Of a stretch of 64,000 bases of DNA, positions 22,251-29,600 are shown piece by piece. The notes below the pieces were generated by a model. That model did no database searches. It had not been told where the DNA came from and saw only the letters and a program-made list of their open reading frames with translations. The translations under genes were made by a program, and so were the position numbers. The DNA is from Anthoceros angustus. Lineage: Eukaryota; Plantae; Anthocerotophyta. The stretch lies in contig MU008162.1 of the NCBI GenBank assembly GCA_010909165.1, forward strand, positions 1,612,001 through 1,676,000. Direction: 5' to 3'. Numbering within the stretch: position 1 is the stretch's first letter; each line of letters begins with the position of its first letter.

Positions 22251-23201
22251 GGGGCGGTTGGGGGTTATAGGGTAGATTAGTGCGGAGGAGCTAAGCTACA
22301 AGTCATCTTCCAAGTCAACCACAAAGTTCTCTGAACGTTGCTTCTGAAGAAATGCCCCTTATCTGGATCACCACATCATCATGAAGAATTTCCATAAATT
22401 TTATCAGTAATAATTAATAATTATATATATTCAATATATATATATTTTAAATATAGATATTTTTGCCTAATCTACATTCCATCATTGCATCGTTAATCAA
22501 CAAGAATGCTGAAGGTAACATTCAAGCTCTTAGCACAATCACACTAAGGTATGAAATATATGTTGGCAGCAGAGCCGGGGAATTCGTGGAGCAGCTCGGG
22601 AGCGAGGTTGCGGTCACCTTTGGGGATCTTGGGCGGAGCATGGCGGCATGCGTCGGCACACCAGATCGTATGCCATGGAATCCCGTTTGGAACATCCAAG
22701 TGGTCCACCAGGTCATCCAAGTCTGCTCAACCTTAGCCGGCATCCTGCCAACACCAACCAGAACATAGGGTGAAAGAGGGCATCAGATTTGCTTTTGCGG
22801 TGTGCTAGCGGGAAACGTAGATGTGGGTAGCTACAGAGTCGTAGGTGTAGCAGCCGATGTCGCATGGCCAGTGGGTGCTACCTGACTTCGAACTTGTTGT
22901 TCCCCAGAGGTGCGTTGGTGCTCACAAATCACATGATCATCACATTTGTGCACAGATGATCATCAGACAGTTGTATGGCCTGCTCACCTATGGAAGACGA
23001 CATAAAGCATGTGGTTTGGCAGCCACGGTGAACACATCCATCGCGCTGTCTGCTTCTATGTAATTGGCCATGCAGGCCACTGGGCCGGAGCACGATCCTG
23101 AGACGAAGCCCAGCCTCATCGGATTCTGGAATCCTGGATGGCAGTTTGGGCTCTGTTCGCCAGCTGCTGGGAAACGCCACTAGTACTGGCTCGATATCAA
23201 G

Positions 23202-25843
23202 CTAATAGCTGTAATCCGAACTACTGCTGCTGCCCGTTCTGCAGGATGGCGGCTCTTCCTTGACAGAGGAGTCGTCCGCTCCAGCGGGTAAGGCACTAAG
23301 TGGTCGAGGAACTCCACTGAAATCCTGGTCCTTCAAATAGAGACTACCTGCTGCATTGTCGGCCTCCTTTGGCCGTTCTCCTGCAAACACATCTTCACGA
23401 GGTCCAGAAGAATGGCAAGGTCTGTTAAGTTCCATCCCCCTTGCAACCTGGGGTCAACCAGGTCGCCAACGCTGGTAGTACTGGAGTCTTTCAACTGCTC
23501 TAGAGCCCAAAAGGAAAGAAGGTCGCCATCCTTGAGAGCTGGATGACCTGTGATAAGCTCCAAGACCACCACTCCGAAGCTGTAAACGTCGCTCTTAGGG
23601 GAGAAGACCCCAGACCTGATGTACCCTGGATCCATGTACCCAAAGGAGCCCTTTACACCTGTCTGTACAGATGGGAAATGCGTGGCATCTGCAGGGCCAG
23701 CTTTTGATAGGCCAAAGTCGGCGAGCTTGGCTGAGTCTGTAGAAGTGAGCAGAATGTTGGCTGATTTGATATCGCGGTGGGCAATGGGAGGACTGGATTC
23801 GTGGTGCAGGTATTCCAGAGCACATGCCACCTGGTATGCTATGTTCATTCGTGAGCGCCATGAAAGAGGTCGGAGGGCTTCAGCTATGGTGTCGCTGGAG
23901 TGAAGCCTGTCATGTAAACTCCCATTGGGAAGGTATTCAAACACTAGCATCCGGGTGCCTGACCAACGACAAGCTCAACTTTAGAATACATTTGCAGTCG
24001 AGTAGACCCTGCTGGTGTAAAGAAAGCATGCATGTGCTTGTCCACTAGAGCAGGTATGTCCACTAGAGCAGGTATGCTTACCTTTTCCTTTGCAGAAGCC
24101 CATGAAGTTGACTAGGTACTTGTGATGAACTTGCTGCAAAAGAGCCACCTCTTCTGCAAATCTTGAAGTTCTACTTGCTGCTCTGGAATTGGCCTTCTCC
24201 ACCTTGACTGCTGCAGTCACAGCTCCTGGAAAATTTGCCTTGTACACTGTGCTGAACCCCCCTTCTCCCAGCACGTGATCCCTGCTGAAGTTGTGGGTGG
24301 CCCTGATGAGTTCCGCTCGAGAAAACAACCTATTTCTTCCATTAGCGGATATAGGTGGCGTGGGATGGCGCACACATCGGAGATACCAGTAGATGCCACC
24401 ACCCACGACCAGCATCAGGACCAAAACGGAGGCTGCCATGGAGCCAATAACGGGAACCTTGGGGGAGGGGCGTCGAGTTCGACCGCCAGAAGAACCGGGT
24501 GATATCGATGTTGCAGAGGGACCGGGTGATAACGATGTTCCAGAGTTACTGATCAGCCGCTCCATAACTTTGACATTATCGATCACTGGCCCACACAACG
24601 GAGAATCGGCGTCTGGTATACCCAGATCTACGAAAAACTGAACCACTGTCGAATGGCCTTCACAACTGTAGTTCAGTGTCTCGATCGACCACCTGACGTC
24701 TCCTGCTTGAGTGGAACGCTGACGAACTGGAAACTGGTGCACCTCTGTCTGCGCAGAATTACTTTCGTTTACACATAATATGTTCAACTTCACCGTCAGC
24801 GCCTGCCTGTTGGAATCGGACTCTGAACAAAAGCCGAAGACGGTAGTGTTGCCACTAAGATCCACAAGGTATCCTGCCAGGGAAAAAGATAGAGCATACT
24901 GAGAGCCAGAGGACGGTTTCTTCGGAATAGTCTGGACTACATCGGATCCTGGCACAAGAAGAATGCTGCCGTTGCTACCTCCAGCAGTTGTCCCATTTAT
25001 CTTATAGTTCGTTGTCATCCATTTCGGTGGCCGGATGGACGTCACCTGCCAACCGCAGAGCATGAAGTCATTGGGGGAAGCTAGCAGATATGGTGGAACA
25101 ACACTGCAGCGCTCAAAGCCGCCATTGGCCAACAGGTTATCCAGGCCCACCTGAGTGTCTTCATCTGCTGACTGTCGCACCGCGAGTCCTGAAACGGTGG
25201 TGGCGTTGTAAGATTGAAAGGTGAATTCTCGGCCCAAGTATGGTCTTGCTGAGAAGGCCGCTTCTGTGCAGAGAAAGACCGCGAAGCGCGTTGCGACGTC
25301 CTTCCCTGCCGCCATGAACAAAGCCTCTCCGCGGTCAGGGGACTTGAGCGCACTGCGGATGCTATTGTCGGTCTCATTGTAAAACCACTGCTGCTCTAGC
25401 CTGGAAACATTGCAAGCAGCAACAGAGAAGGGCAGGTCCTCAGTCGGCTTAGGAGCGTATACGCCTAGATCTATCGGGAGTCGCTGGCTTACCCGGCCAT
25501 CATAATACTGCTGCGTTCCAGCGTCCAGGCACAGTTCCTGGCCTACCACATCTACGAGTTCGATGGCCTTTGTTCTCGGATTGTAGAGCCAGCTGACCTC
25601 GTTCACCTGACTGGCCACGCATGGATAAAGCGCCACGGCGTTGCCCATGAAATTCTTGGGTGCGTTGTAGACATTGAGGCAGTAGGAACAAGTGGGCACG
25701 CCTGACGAGTTTTTGCTGCCCACCACAATCCAGCCCCGTCCTCCATCCGCCGCTGCCGGTAGAGGACCCACCACCATATTCAGGCAGACTGAGAACGCAA
25801 TCACCAGCAATCTTGCATCTACCCTAGAAGTTCTAGGAGCCAT
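23202..25843 (-). CDS. Receptor-like kinase: signal peptide, ricin-B-like beta-trefoil, DUF642-like domain, TM helix, RD Ser/Thr kinase; exon 1 25843-24082, exon 2 from 23958
   Basis: Kinase motifs LGEGGFSTVYK, AAVK, HRDIKSANILL, DFGLSK, GSFGYMDPGY and DVYSFGVVVLELITG. TM ASVLVLMLVVGGGIYWYL. Ectodomain CLDAG, QQWFYN, NLLANGGFE and CGPVIDNV. As assembled it stops at 23333; a probable 1-bp indel would extend it to 23202. Confidence 0.9.
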
Positions 25844-26486
25844 AGTCCTGGACAACAATAGGCCAAGCGCCACCGATACCGCAATGCAAAGGAGCAGAAA
25901 CTCGAAGCAGATCTACAACGGCGCCAGCCTGGGACCCCGCCGACTGATTTTCAATTGTGCAGACGGTTGAACAGACCGATGATTTGCTACTCAAGATGCA
26001 ATGCGGTACGATCACGATGCGATGCGATGCGATTCCTGTGAATTCGTCAAGATTTGTCAAATGCAGTTCCCTTCCCACCACAAATTCCACCAAGTGCGAA
26101 CCATAAAGCTATTCCCGGCGTCCGTCAGCTGCGACAATCGAACACTACTTTTCACGAGGTCGTAAACCTCGTCATCTGAGCCAAGGGCCGGACAGGATAT
26201 CAAGTCATCAGCATCAAAGCAACCCTGGAGCTCACGCCCACTGATCAATATTTCGAATTCCGAGGATGCAAATGCTACATGGGTTTATCCGACTCATGGA
26301 CACTGGGCAAATCGATGCCGTTCACAAAACAGGGGACACGGTGTGCATCTCTGCCTAATTATGATCTCTCGCTCTTCGAGACCTCCACATGAGCTTGGTG
26401 TCACTAGTACTGTGACGCAGAGACAAAAATCAGGGCATGGAAGCATGAAGCAGGGCACCCCCTTTTGAGATTGATTGAGTTTGAAG

Positions 26487-26681: not shown

Positions 26682-29600
26682 TTCCCACTCAACACATCGC
26701 TACTCTTTTAAGCCTAACATCTTGCTAAACTTAACGTGCTTCTCTAAAGTCAACCCTTTGGTCAAAACATCCGCAGCATGTCCAGTGGGACAATACGCTA
26801 GCTCTATCTCCTTGGATTGAACTTTCTCTCGATGAAGTGATGCTTTACTTCAATGTGTTTCGTCCTCACGTGAAAAGTAGCATTCTTTGCTAAGTAAATG
26901 CAACCTTGATTGTCGTTGAAGATGGTTGTTGCACCCTTCCGCTTAAATCCCATTTCTTGAGCAATCGTCATAGCCATATTGCTTCCATTGTTGCAGATAT
27001 TGCCATGTACTCCGCTCAGAGGACAAAAAGATGGTGGCCTACTACTCCATGAAATGGCTCCCCAAATAGCATAAACACATATCCTGTGGTAGACTTGCCA
27101 TCGACATCTCCATTGTCGAATCACAAAATCCAACCACATGGGCGTCTTCATGTCGATCCTTTTGGTATTTCAACTTCCAATGTTTTGTGCCGCGCAAGTA
27201 TCTGAATATCCTCTTGACTGCTTGATAATGCTGTTGTCCAGGGTTGGCCAAGAATCGACTCACAACTCCCAGTGCCTCTGCAATGTCGGGCCTTATCCTT
27301 GTTGCCAAATATGTAAGATAGTCAACAGCAGGTTGGTAGAGAGTCTTATCTACTTTCTTTTTCTCCTTTTCAGTTAAAGGGCCCATCTCCTTTGATAGCT
27401 TCTCATTGAAGATCATTGGCGTCTTCATGAGTTTGCAATCTTGCATGCAAATGCTCCAGTATGGTCTCCACATATGTTTGTTGGCTCAAAGAGATCATTT
27501 TGTTAGCCCTATTCCTTTCCACCTTTATTCCTAGGAATAGTGGAGCTCACCCAAATCTCTCATGTCAAAGCTTGCATTAAGGCTTTGCTTTCTTGAGTCT
27601 AAGAGTTCCATGTCATTGCTAGCAATAATCAAATCGTCCACATAGATAGCAATGATAATTATGGATTCTCCCACTCTCTTCACATAGATATTCCAATCGG
27701 CATTGGTTTTCTTGAAACCTCTAATTTGGAAAAACACATCAACCTTACGATACCAAGCAAGGCGATTGCTTAAGACCATCTGAGCCTTTAGCAGCCTACA
27801 TACCTCTCCCTCGCGTCACGGTATTTCAGATCCCTCCGGCTGGTCCATGTAGATCTCTTCATCCGGATCTCCATTCAGAACGCAATGTAACATCCATATG
27901 ATGTATCTCCATGTCGGCGGCTGCGATAGCTAGGAGAGCTCGGATAGATGCTATCTTAGCGGCGGGGAGAAGGTATCGATAATCCACACCGGGACTTGTG
28001 TATATCCTTTCCACCAGCCTTGCCTTGTAGCGCTCTATGCTTCCATCGACCTTGCGCTTAATCTTGAATGTCCACTTTGATCCTATGCTCTTCCTTCCGT
28101 GAGGTAGAGGAGTGATTGCCCAAGTTTTGTTCTTGAGAAGAGAGTTATACTCACCGGCCCAGCTTCTTTCCACTCCTTTGCCTTTGGTCCTTCCAATGCT
28201 TCCCTTAGGCTTTGTGGTTCGGCATCGCCAACCATGCCTCCTCATACATACATGCATTCATGGATTCCAAGATCTTCTGAAGGTTTCCATTGTCTCGTTG
28301 ATCTTCTCAAGATTGGTTGTCTCTCTCGAATACTTGAGCTTCCTCTTCTTCAATTACGACAATGCTTTGATCTTCATCTACTTCTCCAACCGCGACATCA
28401 GGAATTTCCCTTTCTCCCCCCTCTATGTCGCATTGTTGAGAAGGTTCGTTGGGCTCAGGAACAGGTTGCTCAAGAGTGTCATCATACTCACAATCCTCAT
28501 CAGGGTGGTCAACATATGCTGTCGGATCCTTCATGATAACCACTGGGGTTGGAGCTCCCACTTCTTTGCTAGGTTCCACAACCTCATTAAATACAACGTC
28601 CCTACTAAAAATGATCTTCTTCCTTGAAAGATTATACAACCGGTAGCCCTTAATCTCAGTAGAGTATCCAAGCATAAGGCACTTCACGCCTTTTGGATCC
28701 CATTTTGTTCGGGTTTGCTTCGGAACGTGAGCATAAACCATTGAACCAAAGATCCTCAAATGGCTTATGTCTTGGCGCGAGACCACGCTTCCTCGGTCAT
28801 TCCAACAATAGCTTTGGTTGGAACTCGATTCAAAACATAGGTTGCTATAACAACAGCCTCACCCCAAAAACGTACTTCCAAGCCACTATGATGTAACATG
28901 CATTTGCCTCCACGGACTCAAGTTTGCGCCCGCCACTCCATTTTGCTCCGGTGTGTGAGGATGGTTAGTTGCCTTCCAATTCCATGCTCCTTGCAAAAGC
29001 GTTGGAAGTCGGTGGAGATGTATTCACCTCCGTTGTCACTACGCAAAGTCTTGACGTTGTCCACTTGCGTTCTCCACCATGGCTTTCCATTCCTTGAAGA
29101 GTGTAAATACCGGATTTCTCCTTCATAAGATATGTCCAGTCTTCCTAGTGAAATCATCCACAAACACGAATGTAGCGGGCTCCGCCATGAGTGGGATTTT
29201 CATTGGACCACACACATCCGTGTGTACCAACTATAGCGCCATCTTTGCTAGTCGCACTGCAATCTTTGGGAACTTAGTTCGGTGTAGCTTTCCATTATGC
29301 ACCCTTGGCATAATTGCGGCTCACCCACTTCTTTCAAATCCAAGCTCAGAACCATATGTTGGTTCTTCATCAACTGATATTGTCCACACCAATGTGCCCT
29401 AGACGTTGATGCCATAAATCAATAGATCCAATGCTATTTTGCGAATCGTCCATAAAGGTGCAAGCTTGCCTTCCCACAGAAGCACACAACTTGTACAAAT
29501 TTCCTATTCGGATGCCCCTAGCAATCACTTTAGCATTCGATAACTCAGCTCGATTGGATCCAAATCCTTTTGGAATTGAACACAACCTCATGACTGATCG

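Follow-up and report, generated by a model that had tools for sequence, protein, structure and literature searches.

A receptor-like kinase with a ricin-B-type trefoil and a DUF642 module in its ectodomain: a candidate glycan receptor from an old land-plant family

Plant cells sense their surroundings mainly through receptor kinases, and nearly all the ectodomain classes known for receptor-like kinases (RLKs) have come from flowering plants. What kind of receptor, then, is encoded by the kinase gene on the minus strand of a 64,000-nucleotide stretch of Anthoceros angustus DNA (contig MU008162.1, positions 1,612,001 to 1,676,000; this whole stretch is ‘the window’, and all coordinates below refer to it), and what might it sense? 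An earlier note, made from the sequence by eye, had read it as a receptor kinase with an unusual lectin-like ectodomain. Having followed this up computationally, we consider it probable that the gene encodes an intact single-pass RLK/Pelle kinase whose ectodomain combines a β-trefoil with a DUF642 (domain of unknown function 642) module, that it belongs to an old land-plant family, and that it acts, by inference, as a glycan receptor. Among lectin-type RLKs, its pairing of an R-type lectin with DUF642 in the ectodomain is new.

The gene has two exons, the junction between them (in phase 1) having been read from the sequence. Exon 1 runs from 25843 to 24082 (searched as window:24083-25843:-, 587 codons, open throughout) and exon 2 from 23958 to 23336 (searched as window:23336-23956:-, 207 codons, uninterrupted), with a TGA stop at 23335–23333; searches, alignments and fold comparisons took the two exons, or parts of them, separately. 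The list of open reading frames (ORFs) gives one long minus-strand ORF, 25873–23981, with a second, 23950–23333, that carries on the kinase domain. The ATG at 25843–25841 is the first in-frame ATG downstream of the upstream stop, and the exon junction reads ...FCKGK-G-TRMLVFEYLPNGSL, with donor G/GTAAGC and acceptor CAG/G. The earlier note had given 23958–25843 as the extent of the gene; 23958 is in fact the first base of exon 2 and not the gene end, so that this range stops at the intron and misses exon 2 with its HRD and DFG motifs and the whole C-lobe, that is, most of the kinase. The features, with the evidence for each in brackets, are as follows.

25748–25843, minus strand: start codon and signal peptide, residues 1–32 (ORF list and translation; h-region LLVIAFSVCLNMVV; predicted helix 11–23)
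25193–25747, minus strand: ricin-B (R-type lectin, CBM13-like) β-trefoil, residues ~33–217 (Pfam, family profile, VIA-align)
25401–25492, minus strand: 92-nucleotide GTAAGC...CAG segment within the trefoil coding region (skipped in a contig of run X9, joint 25399/25492)
24554–25147, minus strand: single DUF642-type jelly-roll (galactose-binding-domain-like), residues ~233–430 (Pfam, hhalign, Foldseek, ESM Atlas)
24458–24553, minus strand: Ser/Pro/Gly-rich stalk, residues 431–462 (translation; low model confidence, without secondary structure)
24380–24457, minus strand: transmembrane (TM) helix, residues 463–488, then the basic stop-transfer sequence RCVRH (translation; predicted helix 469–491)
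24082–24379, minus strand: juxtamembrane segment and kinase N-lobe, with GEGGFSTVY, AAVKVEK and FAEEVALL (Pfam Pkinase and PK_Tyr_Ser-Thr, residues 521–589)
23959–24081, minus strand: intron of 123 nucleotides, G/GTAAGC...CAG/G, phase 1 (sequence; skip in a contig of run X9; same position and phase in contigs L001 and L003)
23333–23958, minus strand: exon 2, kinase subdomains V–XI, with GYMDPGY, RRPTMQQVV and the TGA stop (Pfam Pkinase, E 5.4e-33; family kinase alignment)
23771–23779, minus strand: HRD motif (exon 2 sequence)
23711–23719, minus strand: DFG motif (exon 2 sequence)

Apart from that range, the elements claimed in the earlier note were recovered: the signal peptide, the CLNV and LCLDA trefoil repeats, NLLANGGFE and CGPVIDNV are all read in exon 1, as are the stalk and TM helix, with the catalytic residues of the intact RD kinase spread across both exons.

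Fold and homology together show the ectodomain to be a ricin-B β-trefoil followed by one DUF642 jelly-roll. For the trefoil, Ricin_B_lectin matches 12 of the 14 family members in our ectodomain alignment (A2) at E < 0.01 (best E 1.5e-8), and the A2 profile, searched against the PDB, finds the lectin domain of GalNAc-T9 (E 1.1e-9) along with SNA-II, the Cys-rich domain of the mannose receptor and mistletoe lectin B; a single-sequence PDB search with the ectodomain gave no match, only the family profile doing so. An AlphaFold2 model of residues 33–440 was made with A2, in place of an earlier prediction (five-sequence alignment, signal peptide and TM helix included) that had reached a predicted local distance difference test score (pLDDT) of 47.8 and that we kept out of the fold searches. 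Residues 1–184 of the model superpose in VIA-align on the trefoil lectin of V. vulnificus with Z 16.1 and a root-mean-square deviation of 2.6 Å (134/136 residues), dozens more trefoil lectins follow at Z 13–16, and pLDDT stands at 70–94 across most of the domain. At the level of sequence, CLNV...C...EVSW occupies residues 55–85 and LCLDA...C...QQW residues 104–153, giving an α subdomain of the form C55...C75...E82xxW85, a β subdomain of the form C105-L-D107...C144...Q151-Q-W153, and a degenerate γ subdomain. A loop insertion of ~25 residues sits within the β subdomain, and one relative (P0002) has a shorter insertion at the corresponding position. The R-type lectins of the CBM13 class (the lectin domains of ppGalNAc-transferases, the B chains of type-2 ribosome-inactivating proteins, the V. 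vulnificus cytolysin lectin) share the trefoil, the per-subdomain disulfides and QxW; the window protein differs from them in having a single trefoil, in keeping Asp and QxW in the β subdomain only, and in its partners, which are DUF642 and a kinase and not a toxin or enzyme.

For the second module, DUF642 matches 13 of the 14 members of A2 (best E 3.5e-20), and hhalign aligns A2 with a canonical DUF642 protein from Trifolium (TSUD_08480, second module) at 98.4% probability (E 5.6e-15, 161 columns). The hallmark motifs are in place, with NLLANGGFE at residues 236–244, LCGW at 262–265 and CGPVIDNV at 417–424 (CGPVID at 417–422). The top Foldseek matches are jelly-rolls of the carbohydrate-binding module (CBM) families CBM16, CBM22 and CBM4 (E ~2e-5, TM-score by target 0.55–0.67), together with trefoil lectins; in the ESM Atlas fold search the first row is a plant DUF642 cluster, with DUF642-bearing clusters aligning to model residues 201–408 and ricin-B clusters to 1–184. 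The earlier note had suggested structure prediction as a check on both folds, and trefoil and DUF642/CBM-type jelly-roll alike emerged from it. Conserved cysteines pair as C55/C75 and C105/C144 (trefoil α and β) and as C246/C263 and C339/C417 (DUF642); together with nine N-x-S/T sites these would be as expected for an extracellular domain.

Several observations weigh against an intact, sugar-binding receptor of this kind. On the window protein itself Pfam gives Ricin_B_lectin only 28.2 bits (E 2.3e-6, cut-off 29) and DUF642 only 22.1 bits (E 1.4e-4, cut-off 27), and with both below threshold the relatives are needed for the assignment; confidence in the AlphaFold2 model is intermediate (mean pLDDT 67.1, falling below 50 in loops). 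In the α subdomain the sugar-binding Asp is replaced by Asn, Thr or Ser in every member (Asn in the window protein, which reads CLN and ExxW), and the γ subdomain has no QxW, so that lectin activity is not assured. In the kinase, the glutamate of APE is replaced in every member (DPG in the window, DPQ or DPH in relatives). Lastly, run X10, an RNA-like run from the window's own sample, yielded only short pieces of less than 90% identity at conserved kinase motifs.

The state of the trefoil bears directly on whether sugar is the ligand at all. The two lectin-type folds might serve as scaffolds for a protein or peptide ligand, or for a co-receptor; with an α subdomain lacking the canonical sugar-contact Asp, a degenerate γ subdomain, and reports that DUF642 proteins of seed plants bind protein partners, PME3 among them (PMC13516882), this deserves mention, although we judge it improbable, given that most members preserve Cys-Leu-Asp and QxW in the β subdomain (Asp in 9 of 12 rows, with Q151 and W153 invariant) and that solved structures with either fold overwhelmingly bind carbohydrate. 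The β subdomain would be the likeliest sugar site of the trefoil, if the trefoil binds sugar, because it alone retains the Cys-x-Asp ... QxW signature.

Turning to the cytoplasmic side, exon 2 matches Pfam Pkinase at E 5.4e-33, and the G-loop (GEGGFSTVY), the lysine in AAVKVEK, the αC glutamate in FAEEV, HRDIKSAN and DFG are all present; as predicted from these residues, the catalytic set is complete and the kinase is of the RD type. A PDB search returned 5xd6, CERK1, SymRK, BRI1, FERONIA, BAK1 and IRAK4 as the nearest solved kinases, and since all top matches are plant RLKs or receptor-like cytoplasmic kinases and IRAK4, the predicted domain falls in the RLK/Pelle/IRAK group. Closer relatives are found within the family described below: on one and the same scale, exon 2 scores 154–184 bits against family kinases, compared with 141.8 bits for the best kinase in the PDB, and is 43–50% identical to the kinases of the fern and Ginkgo members, the closest of those tested. 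The phase-1 intron lies after K-G at the same place in contigs L001 and L003. Taken together, the kinase scores and the shared intron suggest that the whole gene, and not the ectodomain alone, has been inherited as a unit.

How widely is this architecture distributed? An exhaustive phmmer search with the ectodomain, over 1.84 billion representatives, returned four proteins only. Two of these (P0001, E 5e-21, on contig L002; P0002, E 5e-14, on contig L001) come from one Logan run and lie on GC-rich contigs. The third (P0003, E 2e-6) is a full-length Pteridium aquilinum transcript product of 858 amino acids (c24977_g1_i2), in which Ricin_B_lectin (32.6 bits) and DUF642 (50.7 bits) both exceed their cut-offs and are followed by a TM helix and kinase; DUF642 reaches 36–51 bits in relatives. 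The fourth (P0004) lies on an AT-rich JGI metagenome contig (L003; 3300059835, 43% GC), and the presence of the architecture at this GC content indicates that the family also occurs in a compositionally very different, plant-like genome. L003 has the same architecture with an extra intron or break within the DUF642 module, between ORFs 570–1388 and 1536–2246. With P0003 as the query more members were found, all carrying PF00652, PF04862 and a kinase: Adiantum nelumboides L7F22_021965, Ceratopteris richardii KP509_38G049600, Ginkgo biloba Gb_14982, Gb_21948 and Gb_14981, and three further Logan proteins. The search for the same architecture that the earlier note had called for has in this way found it in Pteridium, Adiantum, Ceratopteris and Ginkgo.

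Other searches were less productive. A word-indexed protein search with the ectodomain gave no match, a blank that is uninformative, and the same kind of search with the first family alignment had the canonical Trifolium DUF642 protein alone among the matches listed, which is likewise uninformative; two metagenome scans, one with the window branch and one with the fern/Ginkgo branch, found no relatives, and our searches, limited as they were, brought up no member of the family from flowering plants.

In the ectodomain tree the window protein, P0001 and P0002 are split from the ferns and Ginkgo with support of 100/100; very long branches within the window's group make its internal order unsafe. 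The fern and Ginkgo proteins follow the same order (signal peptide, trefoil, one DUF642, stalk, TM helix, kinase) and have the conserved Cys pattern, NGGFE and CGPxID in common with the window protein, whereas their ectodomains are only 25–30% identical to it and form a separate deep branch, and their kinases are non-RD where that of the window is RD, with its ~25-residue β-subdomain insertion and a very short C-terminal tail. Sequence comparison therewith points to a small, old land-plant family, conserved rather than a one-off fusion, which spans ferns, Ginkgo and a deeply separated branch that holds the window's gene; that branch, with its two GC-rich relatives, appears very divergent from the fern and Ginkgo one.

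Set against known receptors, the predicted protein stands outside all the standard RLK ectodomain classes, as the earlier note had held: Pfam, read up to E 10, finds no LRR, B_lectin, legume-lectin, C-type lectin, malectin, WAK, LysM or DUF26 domain in it. The G-, L- and C-type lectin RLKs and the malectin/CrRLK1L RLKs follow the same logic, of a carbohydrate-binding-type ectodomain, a single TM helix and an RLK/Pelle kinase, with lectin folds that differ from those of the window protein. As to whether the family is ‘undescribed’, it is indeed uncharacterised, but its Pfam string is already in print and public proteomes already carry these annotations on family members: the supplementary table of a 2025 paper on fern immune receptors lists Ricin_B_lectin, DUF642 and Pkinase in this order, with further entries between, for Adiantum capillus-veneris and A. 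nelumboides, binned as ‘Lectin-RLK’, and the main text places DUF642 among unclassified fern RLKs and mentions a DUF642-kinase in Taxus (PMC12512272). A 2019 survey of lectin architectures in 21 plant species, Ginkgo included, records no combination of ricin B with a kinase (Supplementary Table 3, PMC6362431), and a literature search pairing Ricin_B_lectin with DUF642 found no discussion of the combination in the titles and abstracts of the papers on ricin and DUF642. The architecture is, in the literature found, catalogued in passing, without description, name or study.

The DUF642 module has its own history. The wall proteins of seed plants (BIIDXI, TEEBE, DGR2 and OsDFOT1 type; PF04862) have a homologous jelly-roll with NGxFE and CGPxID in common, and they and the window protein are alike secreted to the apoplast; they are, however, soluble or glycosylphosphatidylinositol-anchored, with two tandem modules and no trefoil, TM helix or kinase, whereas the window protein has one module joined to a TM helix and kinase. 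By its predicted domains, the window protein has a DUF642 domain and falls outside the described family of two-module proteins. That family has been called spermatophyte-specific (PMC13516882), a statement that, as we read it, concerns the soluble two-module proteins, since the domain itself is clearly recognisable in fern RLKs and in the window. DUF642 thus extends beyond the soluble wall proteins of seed plants that served to define it, and this domain of unknown function gains a signalling context in which its ligand might be sought. It is tempting to go further and to suppose that an ancestral land-plant glycan receptor, lost in flowering plants, was the source of the plant DUF642 domain, that the soluble two-module proteins descend from its ectodomain, and that in non-flowering plants it couples the state of pectin or the wall (or the binding of pectin methylesterases, PMEs) to kinase signalling; we offer this as a long shot.

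What, then, might the receptor do? Glycan or cell-wall sensing, as proposed in the earlier note, fits the domain identities, and it is from these that we infer it. In outline, a secreted, glycosylated, disulfide-rich ectodomain of two modules would be linked to an RD kinase by a flexible stalk and a single TM helix; trefoil and DUF642 would bind a glycan at the cell surface, either one of microbial origin or a polysaccharide of the wall (such as pectin or hemicellulose); receptor association would change once the ligand is bound; and, as other lectin-type RLKs do, the receptor might thereby activate its cytoplasmic kinase, with downstream partners then being phosphorylated. For non-flowering plants this adds a testable candidate for a glycan or cell-wall receptor.

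One narrower version of this scheme, which we hold to be possible though rather unlikely, makes the protein a sensor of cell-wall integrity, in which DUF642 reads pectin methylesterification or binds a PME and the kinase relays the status of the wall. The DUF642 homology is solid by hhalign, the window kinase is RD like those of the CrRLK1L-type wall sensors, and DUF642 proteins are reported to regulate pectin methylesterification and to interact with PMEs, e.g. PME3 (PMC13516882). Against this, there is one DUF642 module here and two in canonical proteins (P0005 has two CGPxID motifs), identity to the canonical proteins is only ~28%, and no member of the family is linked to pectin.

No more and no less tentative, in our estimation, is a role as a pattern-recognition receptor for microbial or otherwise foreign glycans, that is, as an immune lectin-RLK. 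In the kinase alignment (A3) the window protein and its nearest relative (on L001) are RD (HRD), which counts against such a role, and every member from ferns and Ginkgo is non-RD (HGD, HTD, HSD), which speaks for it, the non-RD state reportedly having been found by Dardick and Ronald in 2006 to be enriched among plant immune receptors. Fast divergence of the ectodomains (at most 31% identity, on very long branches) points the same way, as does the grouping of the fern proteins with immune-type lectin RLKs (PMC12512272). The contrast between RD in the window's branch and non-RD in that of ferns and Ginkgo is a hint that roles have shifted within the family.

Is the gene used? Contigs of four public runs were compared with 23200–26000. 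Run X1 contains this region almost unchanged and is probably the assembly from which the sequence came. In run X6, from a related species (~90% identical), the stretch is present as contiguous DNA, intron included, and similarity to this genomic contig stops at 25855. Run X9, RNA-like and from the same related species, gives low-depth contigs along the whole coding sequence, one of which skips exactly 123 nucleotides at 23958/24081, with CT..AC ends on the plus strand (GT..AG on the minus). The exact skip shows that the orthologue is transcribed in the related species and that the predicted intron, in the kinase, is real and is correctly removed there.

Another X9 contig skips the 92-nucleotide segment 25401–25492, with ends CGG/GTAAGC ... 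TTTCCAG/G. We considered a constitutive intron here and ruled it out, because the segment contains Cys144, conserved in 12 of 12 alignment rows, and because its excision shifts the frame; removed from the window sequence, it brings a frameshift, a stop after 8 codons and the loss of Cys144. The skip looks like an unproductive, exitron-like alternative splice, and we leave it outside the coding model. X9 also skips 150 nucleotides at 24997–25148, over the NGGFE region, with non-canonical ends (TA..CC) and a 24-letter anchor; diverged sequence may have been misaligned here, or the relative may carry a deletion.

Such frame-breaking splicing in the relative's RNA, together with the long branch and a stop that falls only two residues after the conserved VV, leaving a very short C-terminus, might be taken as signs of a decaying, non-functional copy or of an artefact of the gene model. 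We find this very hard to credit, given uninterrupted ORFs of 587 and 207 codons, the retention of all family-conserved cysteines and catalytic residues, and an orthologue that a related species has kept and transcribes, with the kinase intron removed correctly. An intact receptor kinase with a putative glycan ligand remains the reading that we prefer.

The 3′ end of the gene is provisionally placed, from the translation, at the first in-frame stop, with VV aligning with the RPTMxEVV of the family. Enumeration of GT..AG pairs for a further 3′ exon gave many candidate extensions, none of them compelling, and the stop at 23335–23333 was kept. On the minus strand, in the +1 frame with respect to the kinase, an ORF of 77 amino acids (23202–23435) spans the final part of exon 2 and continues downstream of the stop codon; its Ser/Asp-rich sequence is similar to the C-terminal tails of fern homologues. 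A lost or alternative C-terminal tail for the receptor kinase is possible, although a convincing splice to this ORF was looked for and not found.

As for the surroundings of the gene, tblastn with both exons found no paralogues within the window. About 1 kb upstream, a minus-strand ORF at 26804–27151 ends in ...TIFNDNQGCIYLAKNATFHVRTKHIEVKHHFIERK; to the eye, this resembles the RNase H terminus of a Ty1/copia polyprotein, in which case the gene would adjoin the remains of a retrotransposon.

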